Notes under the pieces: generated by a model
What the model saw: the letters and a program-made list of their open reading frames with translations, nothing else
Databases searched by the model: none
Told to the model about the DNA's origin: nothing
IMG/VR virus record: IMGVR_UViG_3300032268_000832
Span: 242,464 to 306,463 of that record
Strand: one strand, 5' to 3'
DNA: 64,000 nucleotides
Part shown: positions 26,927-43,057 of the stretch, one piece after another
How the letters are laid out: each line of letters opens with the position of its first letter
How positions within the stretch are numbered: position 1 is the first letter of the stretch
Made by a program: the position numbers and the translations under genes

Positions 26927-27849
26927 TGCAAACACAATTATTAGACTATATCAAGAAATTATCACTTGATGATAAAAAAACGCTTTCACAAAAAGCTCTT
27001 AAGGTTGCTGAGGAATCTGGTGAGTTAGCCAAAGTGGTATTGCCTTTTGACAATGCCGCTGGAACTATTCACAGATTCATCGAGAAAGGTAGAATCCTAG
27101 AAGAGTCAGTAGACGTGATTTTAACCGCTATTTCTATCGCATATGAGTTAGGATATTCCCACGAGGAAATCGAAGAAACAATGCGCTTAAAAGCAGAAAA
27201 ATGGCAAGGTATCCAATACAAGGAAACCCAAGTTGATGACATGATTCCTTTTGAGATACATGTTACTGTTCAATCGTTTATAGAGACAGATGAAATTTTT
27301 AGAGACCTTTGTGCAGAGATTGGGGTTAAACCAATCATATTAGAGTTGGAAAATAAAGGGCAAAATGTGATGCATGATGTAATGACATCATCACATTTTT
27401 TTGGAACCAACACGGGTGCTTACCATGAGTGTTTAAGAATTGAATCATTTTTATTAAAAAATGGGTTTAAGGTTGTTCGTAAAAAAATAGAAACAGTGCC
27501 ATGGCACCCAGCCGCACCAGTTGGTGAAGCACCTATGCCAAAGGATTGTTACTTTGAAGCTCATATTGGATGTATTATAAACGAAGAACAAAAACCTAGA
27601 TTACAAGAGTTGGCAGAGATTAACAATGCTCACTTGTCTAGGAATTTCTTTAAGAAATTGGATAACGGAATGTTCGTTAACATGCTGACACTTAGATGGT
27701 ACGATTGTAACTACGAGAAAGTTAAACATGATGTTCAGAGAACCAAGTTACACTTGACTAGAAACGGAATGGAATACGAAAAAGTAATAGTTGAGTTTTG
27801 CCTATACGACACAAAGGTGAGCCACGATTTTAAATGGTTAGAAAAATAA
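26926..27849 (+). CDS. MazG-like NTP pyrophosphohydrolase fused to uncharacterised domain
   Basis: KVAEESGELA...EESVDV; C-terminal FEIHVT / FEAHI repeats. Confidence 0.75.
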   Translation: MQTQLLDYIKKLSLDDKKTLSQKALKVAEESGELAKVVLPFDNAAGTIHRFIEKGRILEESVDVILTAISIAYELGYSHEEIEETMRLKAEKWQGIQYKETQVDDMIPFEIHVTVQSFIETDEIFRDLCAEIGVKPIILELENKGQNVMHDVMTSSHFFGTNTGAYHECLRIESFLLKNGFKVVRKKIETVPWHPAAPVGEAPMPKDCYFEAHIGCIINEEQKPRLQELAEINNAHLSRNFFKKLDNGMFVNMLTLRWYDCNYEKVKHDVQRTKLHLTRNGMEYEKVIVEFCLYDTKVSHDFKWLEK

Positions 27850-32210: not shown

Positions 32211-32621
32211 ATGAAAGAAATACTCGTAGATTTTGATGGTACGGTAGTAACGCATGACTTTCCATTTATTGGAAAAGACATAGGTTCAGTTCCAGTATTA
32301 AAACAATTAGTTGAAAAAGGTCATAAACTTATATTGTTTACAATGCGTAGCCACAGACCTTACATTCACTCAGATGGTAAGTCAAGAGATTGTTTACAAG
32401 AAGCAATTGATTGGTTTGCTAAGAATGATATTCCGTTATACGGAATAAATACGAATCCAACTCAACACGAATGGACTGATAGTCCTAAGGCTTATGGACA
32501 ACTTATGATTGATGATATTGCATTTGGGGTTCCATTGGCTTTTGATAAAGAATTATCTCAAAGACCTTATGTTGATTGGTTTCATTTAGAAATGATGTTA
32601 AAAGCTAATTCTATAATATAA
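32211..32621 (+). CDS. HAD phosphatase (BT0820-like)
   Basis: VDFDGTVV, LILFTMRS, SPKAYGQLMIDD. Confidence 0.88.
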   Translation: MKEILVDFDGTVVTHDFPFIGKDIGSVPVLKQLVEKGHKLILFTMRSHRPYIHSDGKSRDCLQEAIDWFAKNDIPLYGINTNPTQHEWTDSPKAYGQLMIDDIAFGVPLAFDKELSQRPYVDWFHLEMMLKANSII

Positions 32622-33076
32622 TGGGTAAAACGATAGCATCTGGGTTATTTATTGTAAGAAAAGACAATAAATTATTGATTTGTCATCCAACAAATCACCC
32701 AAAAAATGTTTATAGCATACCTAAGGGTAAGGTAGAAGATGACGAAATCTTCTTAGAAGCTGCATTTAGGGAAACATATGAAGAAACTAACTTGGATTTA
32801 AACGGTTCTACTGATTTCACAATACATCCTTTGAGTTCTGTAAACTACAAACACAAAAAGAAAATACTTTATCCGTTTTTGGTTCATGAAAACAAGAAAT
32901 CTAAGTTTGATTGGGATAGTGTTGAGTTGAAATGTAATTCAAACGTACCAGAGGATAGAGGTGGATTTCCAGAAATGGATGGGTACAAATGGGTTACGTT
33001 GGATGAAGCGAAGAGTTTAATACATGACACGCAAGTTAAGTGTTTACCGAAAATAAAAGAAATTATTGAAGAATGA
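32621..33076 (+). CDS. Nudix hydrolase
   Basis: IPKGKVE...AAFRETYEETNL, FPEMDGYKW. Confidence 0.9.
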   Translation: MGKTIASGLFIVRKDNKLLICHPTNHPKNVYSIPKGKVEDDEIFLEAAFRETYEETNLDLNGSTDFTIHPLSSVNYKHKKKILYPFLVHENKKSKFDWDSVELKCNSNVPEDRGGFPEMDGYKWVTLDEAKSLIHDTQVKCLPKIKEIIEE

Positions 33077-33297
33077 AACTAGATTTACACGGATTAAGAC
33101 ATAATGAAGTCCCAGAAGTTTTAGACTCATTTGTTTGGGATTGCATAAAATTTGGTGTTGACCAAGCAGAAATTATAACTGGAAATTCAACAGAAATGAA
33201 GACAATAGTTAAAAACGTACTCATGGATTACGGTTTAGAACCTTGTAACTTCTTCAATTTAGGTGGCAGTATGACTGTCGATTTTGTAACAATTTAA
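33073..33297 (+). CDS. Smr domain protein
   Basis: LDLHG...IITG...NLGG. Confidence 0.8.
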   Translation: MKLDLHGLRHNEVPEVLDSFVWDCIKFGVDQAEIITGNSTEMKTIVKNVLMDYGLEPCNFFNLGGSMTVDFVTI

Positions 33298-33306
33298 TAT
33301 TAAAAT

Positions 33307-34560
33307 ATGGCTGAAGTAAAAAAAGTCTGGAATGCTGATGGTAACGCATTGTATTTAGGTTATCCATCAGAAGAGTTTGAGAAACTCGAAAATGTAATTT
33401 ATAAAGTAGGTTTGGATATGTTTGAAAGACCGTTCTTATCTAAGGTTGCTGACAACTTTACATTTGATTATAAACTATATGGTTTAGAAAGTGAATTAAT
33501 TCGTCGTATTCTAAAAACGTATAACGCAACTGACCATGGAAACTTGGGTATCTTGTTAAATGGTCTTAAAGGGACTGGTAAAACTGTTACCTCAAAACAA
33601 ATCGCTAATCAGTTAAATCAACCGATTATCATTGTTGGTGAAAATAAACCACAATTTCCTCAGTTCTTAAATAGTATTCCTCAAAATATCACGATATTTA
33701 TTGATGAGTACGAGAAAACATTTGGTAATGCTTCAAACATGCTTACAATCATGGATGGTGCTTCAAACTCTGAGTACAGACGTGTGTTTTTGTTGACAAC
33801 CAACGAATTGAGAGTTGAATCTAATATGATTCAAAGACCAGGTCGTGTTCGTTATCTTAAAACATTCGACCACTTGAAACCAATTATTATCAAAGAAATC
33901 ATTGATGATATTTTGATTCATAAACAATTCACTGATGAGTGTATTAATTTCATTTCAAGTCTTGAAACAATCACTGTGGATATCGTTAAAGCGGTCTTGA
34001 ATGAAGTTAATATTCATGAGGAATCGCCAACAGTGTTCGAAGGTATCTTTAATGTTAAGAAACTTAAGGGTAAATACAACGTTTCTATTCGTGAAGAAGA
34101 TGGTACGCTTACTGAAATTGCATCAAATGTTGGTATATACCCTAGACCAATGTATAATGAAAGCAATGTTGGTTATAGTGTTGAAGTTGATAATATATCA
34201 ATAGGTGAAATCGTTAGAGTTATTAATTATAACACAGTTGAAATTGAACCATACGAATTTGAAGATGGTACACAAATTGGTTTCAAAGAAAATGTTATGA
34301 TTAAAATCGAGGATGCTGATTTAATCAACTATTCTTATGCTTACGATAGTTACGGAAGTACTCAAGTTTCCAGACCAAAAAAGAAATCTTCTGATTTTCT
34401 TAAAAATATAAATAAGGAATGGAGTGAATACGAAAATAATCGTAAAACCCAAAACAAAAAATTGCCAGTTGCTGGAAAAATTTCTAGGGGTGAAGAAATT
34501 ATGGATGATATTTCAAGTAGTTTTGAAACTTTAAGTTCAAATGGTATAATTGGTGGTTAA
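33307..34560 (+). CDS. AAA+ ATPase
   Basis: GLKGTGKT, IFIDEYEK, TTN, RPGRVRY. Confidence 0.9.
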   Translation: MAEVKKVWNADGNALYLGYPSEEFEKLENVIYKVGLDMFERPFLSKVADNFTFDYKLYGLESELIRRILKTYNATDHGNLGILLNGLKGTGKTVTSKQIANQLNQPIIIVGENKPQFPQFLNSIPQNITIFIDEYEKTFGNASNMLTIMDGASNSEYRRVFLLTTNELRVESNMIQRPGRVRYLKTFDHLKPIIIKEIIDDILIHKQFTDECINFISSLETITVDIVKAVLNEVNIHEESPTVFEGIFNVKKLKGKYNVSIREEDGTLTEIASNVGIYPRPMYNESNVGYSVEVDNISIGEIVRVINYNTVEIEPYEFEDGTQIGFKENVMIKIEDADLINYSYAYDSYGSTQVSRPKKKSSDFLKNINKEWSEYENNRKTQNKKLPVAGKISRGEEIMDDISSSFETLSSNGIIGG

Positions 34561-34589
34561 CATAACATTTTGATAACTATGAAAAAGAA

Positions 34590-34793
34590 ATGGTTAATAA
34601 AAAAACAATCGATTTAGGTGAATACATTGTAGTTATCACCTATGACAATGAAACAGGTTCAATATCTGTTGAAGTTTTAGATGAATTACATGAGATTATA
34701 GAATCGATTGACATCACTAATTCCGAAGATTCAAATAACGATGATGATGAGGATAATGATGCGGCCATTGACATAAATATCAGTTTAAATTAA
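34590..34793 (+). CDS. small acidic protein
   Basis: ORF track; Asp/Glu-rich. Confidence 0.65.
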   Translation: MVNKKTIDLGEYIVVITYDNETGSISVEVLDELHEIIESIDITNSEDSNNDDDEDNDAAIDINISLN

Positions 34794-34797
34794 TTTT

Positions 34798-35265
34798 ATG
34801 CAAAAAGCAATTGAGGTGCAAGCACCTAATACATTTACTATTAACCAAGAATATTTAAACGTATTCTTGGCTGGTAGTATCGAAATGGGTAAGGCGGTAG
34901 AATGGCAAAAAGACTTTATCGCCGCACTATCGGATAAACCTATCCAATTTCTTAACCCAAGAAGAGATGATTGGGATTCATCATGGGGACAAACAATGAA
35001 TGACTCTAACTTTGTAGAACAAGTTCAATGGGAATTAGACTCAATGGAAAAATCTCACATGATAGTCATGGTATTTGACCCTAACACGTTATCACCAATT
35101 TCAATGCTAGAATTGGGGTTACACGCCAAAGAACAAAAACTTATGGTAGTATGTCCAGATGGATTCTGGAAAAAAGGTAATATTGATGTTACGTGTGAGT
35201 TCTATGGGATTAATCAATTTAATACCATGGATGAATTAATTGAATTTATGAGAAAACACATATAA
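34798..35265 (+). CDS. nucleoside 2-deoxyribosyltransferase-like protein
   Basis: VFLAGSIEMG..WQ, NPRRDDWD, EQVQWEL, SPISMLELGL. Confidence 0.88.
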   Translation: MQKAIEVQAPNTFTINQEYLNVFLAGSIEMGKAVEWQKDFIAALSDKPIQFLNPRRDDWDSSWGQTMNDSNFVEQVQWELDSMEKSHMIVMVFDPNTLSPISMLELGLHAKEQKLMVVCPDGFWKKGNIDVTCEFYGINQFNTMDELIEFMRKHI

Positions 35266-35772
35266 ATGATTAAGAAAAACAAACAAAAAGAAAGACAACA
35301 CAAATTAAATTTTGAAATTAAACACCCAATGGTGCGTGTTGGTGAACATGGTGTGATTACAGTAAAAGAAGCTCAAAAAATGGCTGATGAACAAGAACTT
35401 GATTTGGTTCTTATCAATGAAAACGCTCAACCACCAGTTTGCAAAATAATGAATTATGAAAAATTCATTTATCAACAAAATAAAGCGGTTAAAAATAAAT
35501 CGCTGGATGTTAAAGAGATAAAACTCGGACCAAATACTTCTGAAAACGACTTATCTTATAGAACAAAACACATATGCGAGTTCTTAGATAAGGGTCATAA
35601 AGTTAAATTGACAATGCAGTTTAGAGGTCGTGAAATGGCGTTTGTTGACAAAGGACAAGAAGTGATGTTAAAATTAATTGTTAGTGTTGAAGACCATGGT
35701 TCTGCTGAGTCTGTACCAAAACTTGAAGGTAAAAAGTTACAATGCACACTTAAACCAAAACCAAAGAAATAA
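35266..35772 (+). CDS. infC: translation initiation factor IF-3
   Basis: LDLVLI..AQPPVCKIMNYEKF, KEIKL.P, FLDKGHKVK, FRGREM. Confidence 0.95.
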   Translation: MIKKNKQKERQHKLNFEIKHPMVRVGEHGVITVKEAQKMADEQELDLVLINENAQPPVCKIMNYEKFIYQQNKAVKNKSLDVKEIKLGPNTSENDLSYRTKHICEFLDKGHKVKLTMQFRGREMAFVDKGQEVMLKLIVSVEDHGSAESVPKLEGKKLQCTLKPKPKK

Positions 35773-35809
35773 GGTTTACATTTTAGTTTTCCGTTAGTAT
35801 TATTGGACT

Positions 35810-36376
35810 ATGAAAAAATACATAGTCAAATACTTAACGGAAAATTATTTTTTAGACAAAAGTCAAATTGGGAACGCTGGAATATATTCCTTTGATGATA
35901 CTAGAGAGTGGAAGACTCCAGTCAACGCTAAGGAGTTAATTGAAGAAATTGTAACATTATTTGGTTATTCTTTCACTAGAACCAAATGGTTTATTCATGC
36001 ATGGGCTAAGAACCAAAAACCAGATTATTGCTTAAAATTTTATTGGACTAGTCATAAGATTGATGGTGATATATTCTTGCCTATTGCTAGGCGAGTTATG
36101 GCATCAACAATTGCTCAAGACTTAGTTAGGGTTGAACCCATGAGTGGTCCAACAGGAACTATTATGTATTTAGACCACTCGACACCAGATTATTTAATAG
36201 GTGGTGTTGACCCAGTGGTTGACAACCCACACATCAATATAGCAAAAGTTAGAAATCCAGATAGGGATGCGATAATAAGAAAATGGGAAGCCAGTGGTTT
36301 ATTAGAGGGTATTGATAATTCAAAACAAAGTATTGCTGCGCTGTATGAAGCCCAAGCAAAGCAATTTTTGAAATAA
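35810..36376 (+). CDS. hypothetical protein with T4 gp23-like major-capsid fragments
   Basis: LPIARRVMASTIAQDLVRVEPMSGPTG and IRKWEASGLLEG...AALYEAQA. Confidence 0.65.
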   Translation: MKKYIVKYLTENYFLDKSQIGNAGIYSFDDTREWKTPVNAKELIEEIVTLFGYSFTRTKWFIHAWAKNQKPDYCLKFYWTSHKIDGDIFLPIARRVMASTIAQDLVRVEPMSGPTGTIMYLDHSTPDYLIGGVDPVVDNPHINIAKVRNPDRDAIIRKWEASGLLEGIDNSKQSIAALYEAQAKQFLK

Positions 36377-36442
36377 TAGAAATATTTATTAAAAGAGTTG
36401 TATAACTTAAAAATAAGATGTATTTTTGCACCAAATGAATGA

Positions 36443-36790
36443 ATGAAGTTTAATATTATAAAAACTAGAAATGGAAAATTAAGGAACAAATTATCTAACA
36501 ATTTTCTAAACAATAAATTAACCGAAGAGGATATTGATTTGTTAATGTCCATGATTGATGATTATGAGAAAGCTAATTTATTAGTTATTGAAAAATTAAG
36601 AAAAGAAAAAAAGATTGAAGCAAAAAGAATAAGTGGTGCACTTAAACAAACAATACATGCACATGGTGCAATAACCAAAGTTTTTATAGGAAGCGCTACA
36701 AAACGCATAATGGGCGCCCTATTAACCAACGAAAAAAAAGAAAGTTTTATCAACAAATTAAAAAAGTTTTTTATTAAATGGATAAGTTAA
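36443..36790 (+). CDS. hypothetical protein
   Basis: ORF track. Confidence 0.7.
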   Translation: MKFNIIKTRNGKLRNKLSNNFLNNKLTEEDIDLLMSMIDDYEKANLLVIEKLRKEKKIEAKRISGALKQTIHAHGAITKVFIGSATKRIMGALLTNEKKESFINKLKKFFIKWIS

Positions 36791-37620
36791 AAATAATTTT
36801 TAAAAATAATTGGAAATCGATAATGTTATCATATACGCTATTTTCAATAAATTCTATTTTAATGTTAATGTATCCAAAAATATTGGGTAATACAATTGAC
36901 CATTTAATTGCTAAAGATTATACGTATATTTGGTATATGATAGGGACATTTATTTTATTAATGTTTTTTGGTTATATCAGTAAAATATACGATATAAAAG
37001 TCTTTTCAGGTATATTTAGAAAATTTGCTTCTGATGAAACTAAAAAACAATTTGAAAACGGTGTTGAAACAACAAAAATAAATGGTAGATTAACACTGAT
37101 GCATTCTGTTATTAGATTTTTTGAATTTGATATGATTGTGGTTCTTAACACAATCTTTGGTGTTTTAGGTTCATTATATTTTTTATCTTTAGTTAGTTGG
37201 CCAATTGTTGGGTTTTTATTAATAAGTGGTTTAGCTATTTTAGCTGCTAGTTATTATTATTCACCAAAATTAGCAGCAATGACTAGATTAAATAATGATA
37301 TATCTGAAGAACAAACTGATATAATATCTGATAGAAAAATAAAGGGTGTTAACAATTTATTAAGAAGAGGTCAAAAAATAGCTATTAAAAAATCATACAT
37401 AGATTCAAATTTTGGTCTTTGGATACAAACAATAGTTTATGGTAGCGTAACAGCTTTATTAACATACTATGTTATGTATAATAAAGTTACGGTAGGTAGT
37501 GTATTTTCAACTTATCGTTATATGTTTGATTTCTGTAATGCTTTATTAGGGTTACCTACAATATTGACATCTTATCTTAATATTAAAGATGTTGTAAAAC
37601 GATTAGAAACAGAAGAATAA
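36778..37620 (+). CDS. ABC-exporter-like six-TM domain protein (no ATPase domain)
   Basis: YPKILGNTIDHL, YDIKVFSGI, TVGSVFS; six TM segments. Confidence 0.75.
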   Translation: MDKLKIIFKNNWKSIMLSYTLFSINSILMLMYPKILGNTIDHLIAKDYTYIWYMIGTFILLMFFGYISKIYDIKVFSGIFRKFASDETKKQFENGVETTKINGRLTLMHSVIRFFEFDMIVVLNTIFGVLGSLYFLSLVSWPIVGFLLISGLAILAASYYYSPKLAAMTRLNNDISEEQTDIISDRKIKGVNNLLRRGQKIAIKKSYIDSNFGLWIQTIVYGSVTALLTYYVMYNKVTVGSVFSTYRYMFDFCNALLGLPTILTSYLNIKDVVKRLETEE

Positions 37621-37621
37621 A

Positions 37622-38143
37622 ATGAAAAAATTTACAAAATTATCGGTATTTGACTTTGATGGGACGCTTATAGATACACCGCTTCCAGAAGAAGGAAAAA
37701 AAATATATAAAGAAAAAACTGGCAAGGATTGGCCACATGCTGGATGGTGGGGCCAACCTATGAGTCTTGATATGCAAGTCTTTGAGATGCCAACAATAAG
37801 CAATGTAATTAATGATTATAAGAAAGAAACCAAAAACCCTGATACTATGATTGTTATGGTTACTGGTAGAATGGTTAAATTAACTGATTTGGTTAAAGAC
37901 ATACTTAACAGACACGGTCTTAAATTTCATGAATACCATTTCAACAGAGGTGGTAGCACAGAATCAGCTAAAAAGAAAACATTTGACCAAATCCTATCAC
38001 AACACCCTTCAATAAAAGAAGTTGAGTTATGGGATGACAGAGAGGAACATATACCCATTTTTCAAGCATGGGGTGATGAACATGTTGCATCTGGTCGATT
38101 AGATAAATTTAATATAAATGTAGTGCCTTCTGTAAGGCATTGA
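37622..38143 (+). CDS. HAD Swiss-Army-knife RNA-repair-like phosphatase
   Basis: VFDFDGTLIDTP, GWW, MVTGR, LWDDREEH. Confidence 0.85.
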   Translation: MKKFTKLSVFDFDGTLIDTPLPEEGKKIYKEKTGKDWPHAGWWGQPMSLDMQVFEMPTISNVINDYKKETKNPDTMIVMVTGRMVKLTDLVKDILNRHGLKFHEYHFNRGGSTESAKKKTFDQILSQHPSIKEVELWDDREEHIPIFQAWGDEHVASGRLDKFNINVVPSVRH

Positions 38144-38212
38144 TAAACAGCCCGCTATAAAATAGTGGGTTTTTTTATTGTTAAAAAGAAAAAAAATAAG
38201 TATTTTTGTAAT

Positions 38213-40168
38213 ATGAATAAAGAAAATAAAATAAAAATAGGTGATGTTTTAGAAGGTAGAATAAGTGTTAACGCTAGTGGTTCAGCATATTTGACGGACC
38301 CAAATCTACCAAAAGACATTTACATACACAAATCCAACACCAACAAGGCGTTGCATTTGGATAAAGTAAAAATCCGCACCAAAGAAGGTGTTGGTAGAGC
38401 AATGGAAGGTGAAGTAATTGAAATCGTTGAACGATTCAGAACGGAATTTGTAGGTACGCTTCAAATAAGTCCTAAATTTGCATTTTTTATCCCAGACAGT
38501 AACAAATTACCAATAGACTTTTTTATACCGTTAAACTCGCTTAATAAAGCTCAAAATGGTCAAAAAGTTGTTGTTAGACTTACTGAATGGAAAGATGATG
38601 CAAAGAACCCTAATGGTGAAGTTATTCGCGTGTTGGGTGATGCTGGTGAGCACGAAACTGAGATACACAGTATACTTGAAGAATATGGATTACCATACGA
38701 TTTTGAGGAAGATGTGTTAGCAGAAGCTAGAGCGATTCCAATTGAGATAACACAAGCTGAAATTGATAAACGTAGAGATATGCGTAACGTACTTACGTTC
38801 ACCATTGACCCAGCGGATGCCAAAGATTTTGATGATGCGTTGAGCGTTGAATGGGTTGACGGTGAGCTGTTTGTTGGTATTCACATTGCTGACGTATCAC
38901 ACTACTTACGTCCAGACACAGAGTTAGACAAAGAAGCGTTTGCCAGAGGTACCAGTGTGTATTTAGTTGACAGATGCGTTCCAATGCTTCCTGAGAACTT
39001 ATCTAACGGATTGTGTAGTCTTAGACCTAACGAGGACAAATTGTGTTTCTCAGCGGTGTTTAAGTTGGACCAAAACGGTCATGTGTTGGAAGAATGGTTC
39101 GGTAGAACTGTGATAAACTCTAACCGTAGATTTACTTACGAAGAAGCACAGATGCTTATTGAAGCCAAAAAGTTACCAGAAGAATATGAAGAATATTTCC
39201 AAACAGAGGAAGGTCATGCGTTATGGAAATCTATTCTAACACTTAATAGAATAGCACAGAAAATGCGCAAAGGTCGTTCAAAGAAAGGTTCTATTTCGTT
39301 TGACAAACAAGAGGTTAAGTTCAAGTTGGATGAAAACAACAAACCAGTTGGTATTCATTTCAAGGTTGCAAAGGATTCAAATAAACTTATTGAAGAATTT
39401 ATGTTGTTGGCAAACAGACATGTTGCTCAATACATAAACAAACGAGAATTACCTAATGTAAACAGAGCGCATGATAAACCTAACGATGATAAATTAAATA
39501 ACTTAAAAGAATTTATTTCACAGTTTGGATATGAAATCCGTATTGATACACCAGAAGAAACTACAAGAACGCTTAACCAGTTGTTGTTGGACGTTAGAGG
39601 TACTGCTGAGGAAGATATGATTAACAACTTGGTTGTGAGAACAATGCAGAAAGCAAACTATACAACCAAAAACATTGGTCACTATGGACTTGGGTTCAAA
39701 GACTACAGCCACTTCACCAGTCCGATTAGACGTTATCCTGACGTTATAACACACAGACTGTTAGGGTTGTACTTGGAGAACAAACCAACGCTACCTAAGA
39801 TTGAAAAACTAGAAGCTAGATGTCAACACTTATCTGAAAGAGAAAAGAAAGCACAGAAAGCCGAAAGAGATTCAATTAAATTTATGCAGTGTGTGTATAT
39901 GAGTGAAAACGTAGGTAAAGTGTTCAAAGGAATAGTTAGTTCTGTAACGGAATACGGTATCTTTGTTGAAATTTTAGAGAACAAGTGTGAAGGACTTATC
40001 AAATTATCTGAAATACAAGGTGACACATATCAAGCTGATACTTTAAATCATTGTGTTAAGGGTTATAACACTGGTCACAAGATTAGACTTGGTGATATGG
40101 TTCATGTAATAGTTTCAAGTGTAGATATAGAAAAAAAGAACATAAATTTATCTTTGATTAACCTTTAA
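38213..40168 (+). CDS. rnr: ribonuclease R
   Basis: cold-shock domains, FTIDPADAKDFDDALS, LIEEFMLLAN, HFTSPIRRYPD, C-terminal S1. Confidence 0.96.
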   Translation: MNKENKIKIGDVLEGRISVNASGSAYLTDPNLPKDIYIHKSNTNKALHLDKVKIRTKEGVGRAMEGEVIEIVERFRTEFVGTLQISPKFAFFIPDSNKLPIDFFIPLNSLNKAQNGQKVVVRLTEWKDDAKNPNGEVIRVLGDAGEHETEIHSILEEYGLPYDFEEDVLAEARAIPIEITQAEIDKRRDMRNVLTFTIDPADAKDFDDALSVEWVDGELFVGIHIADVSHYLRPDTELDKEAFARGTSVYLVDRCVPMLPENLSNGLCSLRPNEDKLCFSAVFKLDQNGHVLEEWFGRTVINSNRRFTYEEAQMLIEAKKLPEEYEEYFQTEEGHALWKSILTLNRIAQKMRKGRSKKGSISFDKQEVKFKLDENNKPVGIHFKVAKDSNKLIEEFMLLANRHVAQYINKRELPNVNRAHDKPNDDKLNNLKEFISQFGYEIRIDTPEETTRTLNQLLLDVRGTAEEDMINNLVVRTMQKANYTTKNIGHYGLGFKDYSHFTSPIRRYPDVITHRLLGLYLENKPTLPKIEKLEARCQHLSEREKKAQKAERDSIKFMQCVYMSENVGKVFKGIVSSVTEYGIFVEILENKCEGLIKLSEIQGDTYQADTLNHCVKGYNTGHKIRLGDMVHVIVSSVDIEKKNINLSLINL

Positions 40169-40215
40169 TATTTATTTTTACATACAAAATGCTTATATTG
40201 TGTAAAATTAAAGTT

Positions 40216-40989
40216 ATGACAGATAAAAAAATTATTCTTAATTTCATTGAAAGAAACTATACTGTTCAATTATCAGAAAGTTTTAAAGTCTATGATAAAG
40301 TTGAAAATAACACTCTTACAGTTGAAGGGTTTTACGAAGAGGTAAAAATCATATTGGGTGATTTTGGCAAAGAAGAAAACAATGTTATCAACATTGTTAG
40401 AAACTGGCTTTCAGATAAAAAAGCGCAATTGGTTAAAGACTTAGATTCTTTTGTTAGAAAAATGGATTTGACTAAGGGTTTTGAACATATTTCAAAACTA
40501 ATGCTTAAAAAATTCTCGGATGATTATAAATACAACAAAGCGTTTATGTTGGAATATGCTTCCGAACATTACAATGAAAAAGTCCTTGTTCCAAAATTAC
40601 AAATTCATATTGAGTATCTTAAGAATATAGAAAAAAACAGACTTAGTTATGATAAAACAATATCAGATTTTGAATCAGAAATGAAATTTGAAGGTTTTAA
40701 ACAACAAGAGTTTGTTAGAGAATATTTGTTAAAATGGTATAAAGATACTGTAATTGATGAGAAAATAGATGATTTGCTAAGCCAATTGGTTATTACGTTG
40801 GGTCCTAGAAGTTGGAAAGTAACATGGATAGGACATGGTGAGTTGAATAGACCTAAAATTGAATCAGTGTTTGGGAATCAATCACCGTCAATTTATGAAT
40901 ACATCATGAAAAAATACGACCAATGGTATGAAACAGCTGTTGAATTTGCTGCTGAAAGATTAATAAGTAAAAATTTTGGAGGGTTTTAA
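40216..40989 (+). CDS. hypothetical protein
   Basis: ORF track. Confidence 0.75.
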   Translation: MTDKKIILNFIERNYTVQLSESFKVYDKVENNTLTVEGFYEEVKIILGDFGKEENNVINIVRNWLSDKKAQLVKDLDSFVRKMDLTKGFEHISKLMLKKFSDDYKYNKAFMLEYASEHYNEKVLVPKLQIHIEYLKNIEKNRLSYDKTISDFESEMKFEGFKQQEFVREYLLKWYKDTVIDEKIDDLLSQLVITLGPRSWKVTWIGHGELNRPKIESVFGNQSPSIYEYIMKKYDQWYETAVEFAAERLISKNFGGF

Positions 40990-41186
40990 AATGGAAAATA
41001 CAACAGGAACAACACAAAACCAAAACGTAAGAGTTTTTGGTGCTTCTACTCGTTTTAAGGGTAGTAAAACAATATATATGCAATTAGAAGAAGAAAAAAA
41101 GAGAAAAGAAGAAAATAAAGAGTAGTTTTATTTGTATTGTTTGATTTTTATTTGTATATTTGCAAAGAATTTAAAACAAAAACATA

Positions 41187-42407
41187 ATGAGTATCTTTAA
41201 TTTTTTTAAAAAACTTTTCTTTAAAGAAAAAAACACAGCGTATGTAAATCACCCAGAAGCGGTTATCATCGCTTGTTATTTTAATCCTGAAAAAAACCCT
41301 TACAGGTTGATTGCATTTAACAAGTTTTACGAATCAATCAAACATTTAAACCACAGAATTGTGGAATGTGTTATTGGTGACGCTAAACCAGAACTAAACC
41401 ATAACAACTTAAACTTTAGTTTGGTACACACCAAAACAACTCTTTGGCACAAAGAAACTTTGTTGAATGGTTTGATTAAAAAATTACCATATTCTTTTAA
41501 GTATGTTATGTGGGTTGATGCTGATGTATTGTTCACAAATAAAAATTGGTTAGTAGATGCTGTTAACAAATTGCAAAAAAATAGAATCGTTCAATTGTTT
41601 GAATATTGTGTTCACTTAGAACAAGACCAATATGAACCAGATTTTAATTTACATGAGGCTAAAGACTTAATGAGTTGTGAACCATTAGTTAGACACCCTA
41701 GAATGTGGAGAAGCTTTGCAGCTAATTTTGTAACAACAAACTACTCTGACGACCACAACTATGACAAACATGGGCATGTTGGTTTTGCGTGGGGTGCTCA
41801 AAGAAGTCTTTTGAGAGAAATGCCTTTGTACGATAAAGCATTGGTTGGTGGTGCTGACCACATCATGGCACATGCAGCTGCTGGTCACATTGGTCACAAC
41901 TGTATTACAAAATCATTTACAGAAGACATTGAAGCTGTTAACAAATGGTCTAAAAAATTCTTTAAAAAGACTAAGGGTAAATTGGGCTTTGTTGAAGGTG
42001 ACTTATATCATATTTGGCATGGTAGCCTTGAAAATCGCCAATATTTAAAACGCATTAAAGAATTTACACCAATTGCTAAGAAAATTAGCAAAAAAGACAA
42101 GAACGGTTTGTATATAACTGAGGATGATACTTATGTTAAAAACTATTTTAAACATAGAGAAAACACTGGTCAAACTAAAACTACAAACGTTAGTGTTGAT
42201 AACGATAATTCTTTTGTTGAATCAGCTGTCATTGGTTACATGACTGATTCAACGGCCATTGGAACTATTGTTGGTGGTAATATGGTTGGTGCGATGGTTG
42301 GTGATGCATTGAATAATAACGAAGGTTTTGCAGATGGTTTTGGTGGTGGAGATTTCTCTGGTGCTGGTGCTGGTGCATCCTTTGATGATAATGAAAATTT
42401 TTCATAA
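41187..42407 (+). CDS. GT-A fold glycosyltransferase-like protein with Gly-rich tail
   Basis: WHKETLLN, WVDAD (DxD), GFAWG, GGAD, HIWHG; tail GFGGGDFSGAGAG. Confidence 0.7.
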   Translation: MSIFNFFKKLFFKEKNTAYVNHPEAVIIACYFNPEKNPYRLIAFNKFYESIKHLNHRIVECVIGDAKPELNHNNLNFSLVHTKTTLWHKETLLNGLIKKLPYSFKYVMWVDADVLFTNKNWLVDAVNKLQKNRIVQLFEYCVHLEQDQYEPDFNLHEAKDLMSCEPLVRHPRMWRSFAANFVTTNYSDDHNYDKHGHVGFAWGAQRSLLREMPLYDKALVGGADHIMAHAAAGHIGHNCITKSFTEDIEAVNKWSKKFFKKTKGKLGFVEGDLYHIWHGSLENRQYLKRIKEFTPIAKKISKKDKNGLYITEDDTYVKNYFKHRENTGQTKTTNVSVDNDNSFVESAVIGYMTDSTAIGTIVGGNMVGAMVGDALNNNEGFADGFGGGDFSGAGAGASFDDNENFS

Positions 42408-43057
42408 TGAAGATAACTTGCATAAGTGATACACATAATCAACATTTACATATCCCACCTGATTGGTTAGAAGGTGGGGATGTGTTGGTGCATGCTGGTG
42501 ATGTATCTGGAAGAGGAACTTTGAAAGAAATCGAAGCTTTTTTAGAATGGTTCAATGAGCAACCATACACACATAAAATTTTTATAGCTGGAAATCATGA
42601 TTTCTGGTTTGAAAAAACAACTGGTTTTGTTGTTAACGAAATGTTGCAAGAAAAGTATCCTAATGTTAAATACCTAAACGATAGTGGTGTTGAAATTGAT
42701 GGTGTAAAGTTCTGGGGTTCACCTGTTCAACCATGGTTCTATGATTGGGCATTCAACAGAGTTGGTACTGATATATGTGAGCATTGGGATATGATACCGC
42801 TTGATACCGATGTGCTTATAACACACGGTCCTATGAAAGGTATTTTGGATATGACTCTTAGAGGTGTATCAACTGGCTGTCCTTATTTGTTGGAGAAGTC
42901 AGCTGAAATGACTAACCTAAAACTATTCGTGTGTGGTCACATACATGAGGCTTATGGTAAGTTTGAGTTCCCAGATGGTGGTGTGTTTGTAAATGCATCA
43001 ACACTTAATTTCAACTATAACGTACAAAATAAACCAATTGTGGTAGAAATAAAATGA
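42407..43057 (+). CDS. metallophosphoesterase
   Basis: ISDTH, HAGD, AGNHD, THGP, GHIHE. Confidence 0.93.
   Translation: MKITCISDTHNQHLHIPPDWLEGGDVLVHAGDVSGRGTLKEIEAFLEWFNEQPYTHKIFIAGNHDFWFEKTTGFVVNEMLQEKYPNVKYLNDSGVEIDGVKFWGSPVQPWFYDWAFNRVGTDICEHWDMIPLDTDVLITHGPMKGILDMTLRGVSTGCPYLLEKSAEMTNLKLFVCGHIHEAYGKFEFPDGGVFVNASTLNFNYNVQNKPIVVEIK

Follow-up and report, generated by a model that had tools for sequence, protein, structure and literature searches.

Organisation of the locus

The locus examined lies in a window of 64,000 nucleotides (positions 242,464 to 306,463) of the IMG/VR virus record IMGVR_UViG_3300032268_000832, which derives from an uncultured freshwater jumbo phage. An open reading frame encoding a small protein of 188 aa (hereafter P0001) was identified on the + strand, directly downstream of the gene for translation initiation factor IF3 (infC). 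The features of the locus, in window coordinates, are as follows:

35266..35772 (+), upstream neighbour, translation initiation factor IF3 (Pfam IF3_N and IF3_C)
35775..35803 (+), promoter-like site TTTACA-17 nt-TATTAT, ending 6 nt before the ATG
35810..36376 (+), coding sequence of P0001, stop codon included
35810..36064 (+), X domain (aa 1-85), a new domain with a predicted alpha/beta fold and conserved F-G-Y-x-F-T-R-T-K-W and C-L-K-F-Y-W motifs
36071..36184 (+), NARM module (aa 88-125), homologue of the N-arm and start of the E-loop of the major capsid protein (MCP), the Gol region of T4 gp23
36185..36265 (+), linker (aa 126-152), LDHSTPDYLIGGVDP...VRNPDR, the least constrained part
36266..36373 (+), PRO module (aa 153-188), homologue of the MCP propeptide motif KW-x2-G-L-L-x-G ... 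I-A-x-L-Y-E-x-Q-A, with which the protein ends
36443..36790 (+), downstream neighbour, conserved 115-aa ORF of unknown function without Pfam or PHROG hit, followed by ABC_membrane_3 and HAD_SAK_1

The gene is located about 220 kb from the head genes, in a conserved block holding NUDIX, Smr, IF3, HAD and RNase R. Related contigs also carry SmpB and a sigma-70-family gene there, with tRNA_bind nearby. All contigs examined (seven genomic contexts) belong to one abundant clade of uncultured jumbo phages, and six of them share the same gene slot. IF3 is followed by the X gene in five of the six syntenic contexts, namely, the window and the related loci L005, L006, L032 and L033, but is absent from locus L034. 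The downstream order is the same in L005, L006 and L032, whereas L034 and L031 keep the small ORF and HAD_SAK_1 but lack ABC_membrane_3.

A single promoter-like site of this kind is no rarer in the scanned sequence than in shuffled sequence. However, it is conserved as TTTAC(A/T)-17-TAT(A/G/T)(A/T)T at the same distance from the ATG in 13 of 15 loci compared (not L031 or L034), while the flanking bases vary, and no such site is visible upstream of the MCP gene. Its function as a sigma-70-like promoter is inferred. Contigs from RNA libraries overlap 35856-36163; these contigs show presence over the gene rather than a transcript start, strand or level, and DNA carry-over is not excluded. Two of them bridge the IF3-X gap, so read-through transcription from IF3 is possible.

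Homology of the tail to the major capsid protein

The matches between P0001 and capsid proteins are statistically solid. The Pfam family Gp23 (PF07068) aligned aa 88-124 to profile positions 7-43 with 28.5 bits (gathering cut-off 24.4; E 1.3e-6), and PHROG 138 'major head protein' gave E 2.7e-5. The phage's own MCP is a 609-aa ORF outside the window (G000:C1:55681-57510, where G000 is the phage genome). Comparison with this MCP using phmmer aligned aa 156-187 of P0001 to MCP 26-58 and aa 88-139 to MCP 73-127, and the order of the two segments is therefore permuted. With family profiles, the two matches reached 40.5 bits (E 1.2e-11; MCP 23-58 for the PRO module) and 29.2 bits (E 5e-8) among 1181 genome ORFs, and no other protein in the genome carries the propeptide or N-arm motif. 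A profile built from six MCPs placed the NARM module at MCP 73-110 (E 2.9e-11) and the PRO module at MCP 25-58, and did not match the linker.

P0001 is not a capsid protein. Only 37 of 376 Gp23 profile positions are matched, plus the propeptide motif, and the tail is predicted disordered. The PDB chain of T4 gp23 shows VMGMVRRAIPNLIAFDICGVQPMNSPTGQVFAL at 95-133 and LLNKWKPLLEGEGLPEIANSKQAIIAKIFENQEK at 5-44, which align with the N-arm module of the family (12 bits; family profile 89-127) and, only weakly, with its propeptide module (0.5 bits). The NARM module is thus the positional homologue of the gp23 segment containing the Gol peptide (probably around residues 93-122). NARM tails resemble other T4-type MCPs (mean scores 76-82) more than the MCP of the clade itself (66), and 12 of 33 residues of the segment in P0001 are identical to the own MCP. 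The PRO module shares 14 of 31 residues with the own MCP and 17 of 30 with the MCP of Flavobacterium phage immuto.

These results support the original prediction of a small non-structural protein next to infC that carries permuted MCP segments, one of them Gol-like; the region it placed at 36074-36373 corresponds to residues 89-188 and contains both peptides, and its account of the T4 gp23 sequence is correct. However, the N-terminus, which it described as unrelated, is a conserved domain shared by a large family. The original prediction missed this family, as well as a second paralogue in the same genome that carries a different MCP piece.

The X domain and its family

The X domain was predicted by AlphaFold2 with a pLDDT of 82-89 in P0001 and 94-98 in the relative P0106. 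No Pfam or PHROG family was assigned to it. BLASTP and phmmer comparisons between the N-termini of the two paralogues were not significant, but the profile-profile comparison (hhalign, probability 91%, E 1e-6) and a reciprocal HMM search established their relationship. The domain, with conserved Y8, Y13, E46, F51 and W65, occurs at the very N-terminus of at least 257 clusters of small proteins (at 50% identity) in a library of 1.84 billion proteins. Fold searches (VIA-wide twice, BFVD, PDB Foldseek and Atlas) gave nothing above background. Only weak winged-helix-like matches were obtained, with a best Z of 5.2 (PurR, TopoVI-A, RFX; rmsd 2.3-3.1 over about 60 residues), Atlas returned VapE/VirE-like segments with rmsd 3.2-3.7, and Foldseek found nothing. 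A protein-atlas feature search returned only small Gp23-hit clusters at score 0.86.

The tails of X proteins carry varying subsets of four MCP blocks, namely, N-arm (NARM), C-terminal strands (CTERM), spine helix (SPINE) and propeptide (PRO). Among 153 members, the architectures were X-NARM 65, X-SPINE 12, X-NARM-CTERM 9, X-CTERM 5, X-NARM-PRO 3, X-PRO 2 and X-NARM-CTERM-PRO 2, and nothing was detected in the tails of 55. The blocks appear in the fixed order N-arm, C-terminal strands, propeptide. No tail segment was assigned to the A domain of the MCP or its insertion region (about aa 135-370), although the same profile covers them. Weaker propeptide remnants are present at further C-termini, and about 20 of the 153 are stand-alone X proteins of 97 aa or shorter.

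The tails are predicted to behave as linear peptides. The pLDDT is below 50 in the tail of P0001, whereas in P0106 it is 45-66 for NARM/CTERM and PRO forms two short helices (pLDDT 67-81). NARM and CTERM tails are not predicted to fold into a small P-domain-like sheet.

P0001 has 59 full-length relatives at 44-95% identity, of which 50 also match Gp23. The tails are under purifying selection; dN/dS is 0.20 (NARM), 0.23 (PRO), 0.27 (X domain) and 0.39 (linker). PRO is present in every member of this subfamily, including short forms of ~130 aa, from which NARM was removed together with the linker by at least four different in-frame deletions. The gene is the fastest-evolving in its block: the X protein is 46/37/51% identical between loci whose neighbours are 46-86% identical. 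By contrast, the MCPs of the clade are 78-96% identical, with the four blocks invariant. In the 362-kb relative G001, the copy has a stop codon exactly at the KW of the propeptide motif.

Scans of viral and metagenome contigs returned only 5 and 8 loci. No cultured relative was found: tblastn of three family members (P0001, P0076 and P0121) against 50,697 phage records hit only MCPs. The Lak-phage hit is the 610-aa MCP of Lak itself, and the RsoM2USA hit is a 411-aa protein. No phage-encoded Cpn10 (GroES) or Cpn60 (GroEL) was found. A complex prediction of the own MCP with P0001, run without controls, gave a score of 0.01 and no verdict, and counts neither for nor against binding.

Possible function

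Function is inferred only. Our preferred but tentative interpretation (probability about 0.3) is that the gene encodes a soluble, non-structural mimic of unfolded MCP, in which the X domain is followed by a disordered tail displaying conserved linear segments of the T4-type MCP. The protein may be transcribed from its own sigma-70-like promoter, independently of the MCP gene and probably before it, although early expression is inferred from a sequence motif alone. The tail would compete with nascent or unfolded MCP for host proteins that read these short segments. The spine helix and strand segments probably belong to the core of the HK97-type fold and should be readable as linear motifs only before the MCP folds. 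The most likely purpose would be to blunt or pre-empt host systems that detect MCP through short motifs or through MCP-EF-Tu complexes (Lit-like, CapRel-like), with X supplying the activity or bulk that makes the encounter non-productive. EF-Tu (Gol-like segment) and the chaperonin (propeptide-like segment) are the candidate contacts. The permuted order most simply comes from a junction of two tandem MCP copies, or a circular permutation, followed by internal deletion.

Fast, modular evolution against an almost invariant MCP fits a variable, host-side partner better than the invariant MCP or scaffold. Together with the disordered tails, the conserved sigma-70-like site and the closeness of NARM to the general T4-type consensus, it shifts the odds modestly towards a host-facing mimic among the functions offered by the original prediction (immune decoy, EF-Tu binder or assembly modulator), none of which was shown. 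The T4 gp23 N-terminus strongly targets fusion proteins to GroEL (PMC3012670, citing Snyder & Tarkowski 2005), Lit and CapRel detect MCP through short motifs, and Avs7 builds EF-Tu into its MCP-sensing complex (bioRxiv 10.64898/2026.01.04.697583). The Gol peptide probably binds EF-Tu domains II-III (Bingham et al. 2000). However, no binding partner was shown, the host is unknown, X has no identified activity, and the spine-helix and C-terminal modules have no documented host partner. EF-Tu and GroEL are highly conserved, which fits poorly with fast tail evolution, and EF-Tu is too abundant to be titrated. A Gol-like peptide alone appears sufficient to activate Lit in T4/E. coli; a displayed motif could therefore trigger a motif-reading sensor rather than block it, and the repeated loss of NARM could reflect exactly that cost.

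A role in the prohead or in assembly is only slightly less likely. In this case the tail would dock on the scaffolding core, the prohead protease or neighbouring MCP subunits, and the protein would be packaged as an internal, injected protein or would time or limit capsid assembly. The four blocks represent the N-arm and P-domain side of the HK97 fold, the N-terminal regions lie inside the prohead in T4, and how proteins are localised to the core is unresolved (PMC9958956). The PRO module stops just before the LTE-A sequence (aa 58-61) of the aligned own MCP, which would fit an L/I-x-E cleavage rule as in T4. The T4 capsid-targeting sequence, encapsulin cargo-loading peptides and the SaPI CpmB mimic of the scaffold C-terminus are possible precedents, in which a short peptide borrowed from, or aimed at, the capsid machinery is attached to an unrelated protein. 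However, those peptides are conserved addresses on variable cargo, whereas here the carrier is conserved and the peptides vary although MCP and scaffold are nearly invariant in the clade. P0001 lacks the N-terminal ~10-aa targeting sequence of T4-type internal head proteins, its N-terminus being the X domain and its MCP-like peptides C-terminal. The distance from the head module, the sigma-70-like site and the closeness of NARM to foreign MCPs count against this role.

It is less likely that X recruits or retunes EF-Tu and the chaperonin for phage translation and MCP folding without an immune role. The modules correspond to the two gp23 segments with reported host-factor binding, the gene shares its block with IF3 and RNase R, the phage has no chaperonin genes of its own, and a SelB winged-helix domain appears among the weak fold matches (Z 4.5). 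However, conserved partners do not explain the fast evolution and module turnover, NARM is dispensable in many orthologues, similarity to the propeptide of T4 itself is weak, and synteny in phages is weak evidence for function. An assembly-coupled regulator, in which X binds nucleic acid and free MCP binds the tail, is improbable. Winged-helix domains (PurR, RFX, MCM, Rpa2 and the primase-helicase C-terminal domain) dominate the fold-match lists and stand-alone X proteins exist, but no Z exceeds 5.2, which is below the informative level, X-domain net charge ranges from -14 to +14 (median +2), too variable to support nucleic-acid binding, and an invariant MCP partner does not fit variable tails. 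Equally improbable is that the tails are in-frame debris of a duplicated or rearranged MCP gene. Repeated module loss, the stop codon in G001 and the scrambled order agree with this view, whereas dN/dS of the modules is as low as for the X domain, the modules persist across at least 98 diverged clusters, and the choice of blocks is non-random and their order fixed.

Relation to known systems

The NARM module resembles the Gol region of the Lit/EF-Tu system in being short and linear, and is displayed outside a folded capsid protein, but it sits on a separate small protein, and many orthologues lack it. The PRO module carries the KW...GLLxG...LYExQ motif of T4-type propeptides and ends where the motif ends, but it is located at the C-terminus of another protein, after the N-arm segment. 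The vertex protein gp24 of T4 is also derived from the MCP gene and matched by the same Pfam family; it is a full HK97-fold capsid subunit, whereas P0001 keeps only about 70 residues of MCP-like sequence, out of order and predicted disordered, on a foreign domain. Like phage anti-defence proteins that bind immune sensors, the protein is small, fast-evolving, variably present between close relatives and apparently transcribed on its own. We found no described anti-defence protein built from fragments of the trigger protein itself, and no precedent for a new domain carrying scrambled, selected pieces of the virus's own capsid protein.

A more speculative and unlikely possibility is that these proteins are trigger mimics, a new class of anti-defence protein displaying the MCP motifs that abortive-infection sensors read, alone or in complex with EF-Tu. 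The four kinds of module would then map the linear MCP segments that bacterial immunity actually reads. If the tails work as linear mimics, they isolate the MCP segments tied to two old questions, namely, why the Gol region binds EF-Tu and whether the gp23 propeptide serves chaperonin targeting or scaffold binding.

The MCP of this clade has more than 8000 relatives in metagenomes, and the window's own stretch occurs in lake, freshwater and wastewater samples. Annotation pipelines will mislabel these genes as 'major capsid protein' because they pass the Pfam Gp23 cut-off.

Location of the gene and similarity to the major capsid protein

The window is the last 64 kb of a 306,463-bp IMG/VR phage record (G000:C1:242464-306463), with a GC content of about 32% and nearly all genes on the + strand. 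The following two genes were identified at the site of interest:
35266-35772, translation initiation factor IF3 (Pfam IF3_N and IF3_C), directly upstream
35810..36376 (+), ORF encoding a 188-aa protein, designated P0001

Both capsid-like peptides noted in the original prediction are present in P0001, and their coordinates (36074-36373) correspond to residues 89-188.

The similarity of P0001 to the major capsid protein (MCP) was evaluated using profile and pairwise searches, and is real. Pfam Gp23 matched aa 88-124 to profile positions 7-43 at 28.5 bits, above the cut-off of 24.4, and PHROG 138 'major head protein' agreed. The true MCP of the phage is a 609-aa ORF about 220 kb away (G000:C1:55681-57510), preceded by an acidic scaffold-like protein. 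Alignment with phmmer placed P0001 156-187 on MCP 26-58 and P0001 88-139 on MCP 73-127; the two pieces are therefore in reversed order. Profiles built from the family raised the scores to 40.5 bits (E 1.2e-11) for the C-terminal motif and 29.2 bits (E 5e-8) for the middle module, and no other ORF in the genome matched. The PDB copy of T4 gp23 confirmed the T4 sequences given in the original prediction, and placed the middle module of the family on gp23 95-133 and, weakly, the C-terminal motif on gp23 5-44.

Conservation of the gene

A word search revealed 59 small proteins (104-210 aa) at 44-95% identity, all unnamed and all metagenomic. Their alignment showed three parts, namely, a conserved N-terminal domain (aa 1-85), an optional middle module comprising the MCP N-arm segment plus a linker, and a C-terminal propeptide-like motif that is always present. 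The short forms of about 130 aa lack the middle module; they show at least four different deletion boundaries, and some leave stubs of the N-arm segment. Nei-Gojobori estimates on 14 coding sequences gave median dN/dS values of 0.27 (N-domain), 0.20 (N-arm module), 0.39 (linker) and 0.23 (propeptide motif). The gene is conserved and is unlikely to be debris. In the complete 362-kb relative from IMG/VR (G001; locus L012 4390-4600), the orthologue has an in-frame TAA exactly at the KW of the propeptide motif, created by a perfect 14+14-nt palindrome (arms ATCTAACAACCCAC and GTGGGTTGTTAGAT) whose right arm is the normal coding sequence. This is either a template-switch mutation or an assembly artefact, and the rest of the motif continues in frame after the stop.

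A second paralogue and a shared N-terminal domain

The genome-wide Gp23 search found a fourth hit outside the window, in a 152-aa ORF at G000:C1:226364-226822 (locus L002 1255-1713), which matched the MCP spine helix (MCP 384-426, 38 bits) and also has relatives. This copy contains an internal tandem duplication of the end of the helix (NEIDREIINDLIAINGN / NEIDREIITDLITINGN), which relatives lack. Its N-terminus is homologous to that of P0001: hhalign gave a probability of 91% and E 1e-6, its N-domain HMM found P0001 at E 6e-4 among 1181 ORFs, and the joint alignment has invariant Y8, Y13, E46, F51 and W65. We refer to this domain as X. Two further short ORFs outside the window, at G000:C1:25793-26038 (-) and 27086-27451 (+), matched the X-domain profile (E 7e-5 and 4e-3 within the genome) without an MCP-like tail, and may be stand-alone X paralogues.

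No Pfam or PHROG family was found for X. AlphaFold2 modelled the domain confidently, with pLDDT of 82-89 in P0001 and 94-98 in the relative P0106; the predicted fold is a helix, two or three strands, and then three helices. Fold searches returned only weak winged-helix-like rows (best Z 5.2) and VapE/VirE-like segments, and the fold was treated as unassigned.

Composition of the superfamily

A profile of X was searched against 1.84 billion representatives and found 257 clusters at E 1e-3 or better (60 at 1e-10 or better). A profile was then built from six full-length T4-type MCPs (own, G001, Flavobacterium phage immuto, Microcystis phage Mel-JY01, P-SSM7 and Lak-A2), and the tails of 153 X proteins were mapped onto the coordinates of the phage's own MCP. 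The modules correspond to the following MCP regions:
NARM, MCP 67-112
SPINE, MCP 385-429
CTERM, MCP 541-599
PRO, MCP 19-60

Table. Architectures of 153 X proteins (architecture, count)
X-NARM, 65
X alone or undetected, 55
X-SPINE, 12
X-NARM-CTERM, 9
X-CTERM, 5
X-NARM-PRO (the type of P0001), 3
X-PRO, 2
X-NARM-CTERM-PRO, 2

No tail segment was assigned to the A domain or the insertion region, although the same profile covers them. When several blocks occur, the order is always NARM, CTERM, PRO, and weaker propeptide remnants are visible at further C-termini. Two small X-less proteins from short metagenomic contigs (P0069 and P0070) carry the MCP pre-spine strand and spine helix followed by the N-arm segment, which is another permutation of MCP pieces. 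In one contig, an X-SPINE gene and an X-NARM-CTERM gene sit in tandem. The order CTERM then PRO is what a junction between two tandem MCP copies would give, and we infer an origin by tandem duplication or circular permutation followed by internal deletion.

Properties of the tails

The tails are predicted to be disordered, with pLDDT below 50 in P0001 and 45-66 for NARM/CTERM in P0106; only PRO forms two predicted helices, at 67-81. The four blocks are invariant in 40 clade MCPs that are 78-96% identical to the MCP of the window's phage. By contrast, the X protein is the fastest-evolving gene of its block, with identities of 46%, 37% and 51% between the window and three related loci, whereas the neighbours (NUDIX, Smr, AAA, deoxyribosyltransferase-like, IF3, the 115-aa ORF, ABC_membrane_3, HAD_SAK_1 and RNase R) are 46-86% identical. 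NARM modules scored better against MCPs of other T4-type lineages (means 76-82) than against the clade's own MCP (66), while PRO and SPINE are closest to the clade's MCP.

Genomic context and expression

The gene lies in a dense island of RNA and translation-related genes (window 32621-43057), which includes IF3 and the following:
32621-33076, NUDIX
33073-33297, Smr
33307-34560, AAA ATPase
34798-35265, nucleoside 2-deoxyribosyltransferase-like gene
37622-38143, HAD_SAK_1 RNA-repair-type phosphatase
38165-40168, RNase R-like RNB nuclease
42407-43057, metallophosphatase

Six of the seven contexts examined share the gene slot, namely, the window and the related contigs L005, L006, L032, L033 and L034. 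The order is NUDIX ... (IF3), X gene, small ORF of 113-127 aa, (ABC_membrane_3), HAD_SAK_1 ... RNase R ... SmpB, sigma-70-family gene. IF3 and ABC_membrane_3 are absent in L034, and the short contig L031 shows only the X gene, a 107-aa ORF and HAD_SAK_1. SmpB, a tRNA_bind protein and a sigma-70-family gene are added nearby in related contigs. A 280-aa protein (window 36778-37620) matching ABC_membrane_3, the transmembrane part of an ABC transporter, has no ATPase partner next to it; it is conserved two genes downstream of the X gene in the window, L005, L006 and L032, and is absent from L031 and L034. Related IMG/VR phages each carry both kinds of small ORF. G001 also shows the true MCP, whereas no full MCP was found on G002 and G003, which are about 26% complete. 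A tblastn search of three family members against 50,697 GenBank phage records hit only MCPs, and the family appears confined to uncultured phages.

A promoter-like TTTACA-17-TATAAT (TATTAT in the window, 35775-35803) ends 6-7 nt before the ATG in 13 of 15 loci compared. As a single site it is no better than chance in this AT-rich DNA, so only its conservation counts; no such site was visible before the MCP gene. A TAnnTTTG element (TATTTTTG in the window at 36421, TATATTTG in L012) lies about 15 nt upstream of the 115-aa ORF. This is the -7 promoter motif typical of Bacteroidota and is a hint about the host, and the nearest cultured relatives of the MCP include a Flavobacterium phage. A strong terminator-like hairpin (window 38149-38171; 10 pairs plus a T-run) lies between the HAD gene and the RNase R-like gene and overlaps the predicted GTG start of the latter, the true start of which may be further downstream.

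The stretch occurs in lake-water, freshwater and wastewater DNA runs, and the runs holding it (DNA and RNA together) come from 17 studies. Contigs of four metatranscriptome libraries overlap IF3, the X gene (35856-36163) and the downstream ORF, although these contigs show no start, strand or level of transcription and DNA carry-over is possible. Two of them bridge the IF3-X gap.

Comparison with known proteins and possible function

Our analysis confirmed and considerably extended the original observation. The original prediction, which proposed permuted capsid fragments on a non-structural protein acting as a decoy, EF-Tu binder or assembly modulator, is partly supported: the architecture is right, and the function remains open. 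P0001 is not a capsid protein; it fails the full-length criterion of the Gp23 family although the local match passes the cut-off. Positionally, it contains homologues of the Gol region and of the MCP propeptide. It does not fit T4 internal proteins, because it has no N-terminal targeting sequence. We found no description of a protein built from scrambled fragments of the MCP on a separate domain, and the architecture is regarded as categorically new. Peptide mimicry in capsid assembly (SaPI CpmB, encapsulin cargo peptides) and small fast-evolving anti-defence proteins appear to be the nearest concepts.

Any function is inferred. The segments kept are expected to belong to the N-arm and P-domain core of the HK97 fold, and should not be free linear peptides in a folded MCP; a disordered tail showing them would therefore resemble unfolded or nascent MCP. 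Two of the segments are tied to host factors in the literature. The T4 gp23 N-terminus targets fusion proteins to GroEL (PMC3012670, citing Snyder & Tarkowski 2005), and the Gol peptide probably binds EF-Tu domains II-III and licenses Lit (cf. Bingham et al. 2000). A 2026 preprint (bioRxiv 10.64898/2026.01.04.697583) states that Lit and CapRel detect MCP through short motifs, and that Avs7 incorporates EF-Tu into its MCP-sensing complex.

The tails vary and turn over while the MCP and its assembly partners are nearly invariant, and a host-facing mimic is therefore tentatively ranked first (probability about 0.30). Such a protein would be a competitor for host proteins that read MCP motifs, most likely to blunt capsid sensing. 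The main objection is that a bare Gol-like motif is expected to activate a motif reader rather than silence it, and the repeated deletions of NARM might reflect that cost. A prohead or assembly role is possible and only slightly less favoured; the one complex prediction, of the MCP plus P0001, returned no verdict. A non-immune hijack of EF-Tu and the chaperonin is less likely, and an assembly-coupled regulator and a functionless remnant are both considered improbable.
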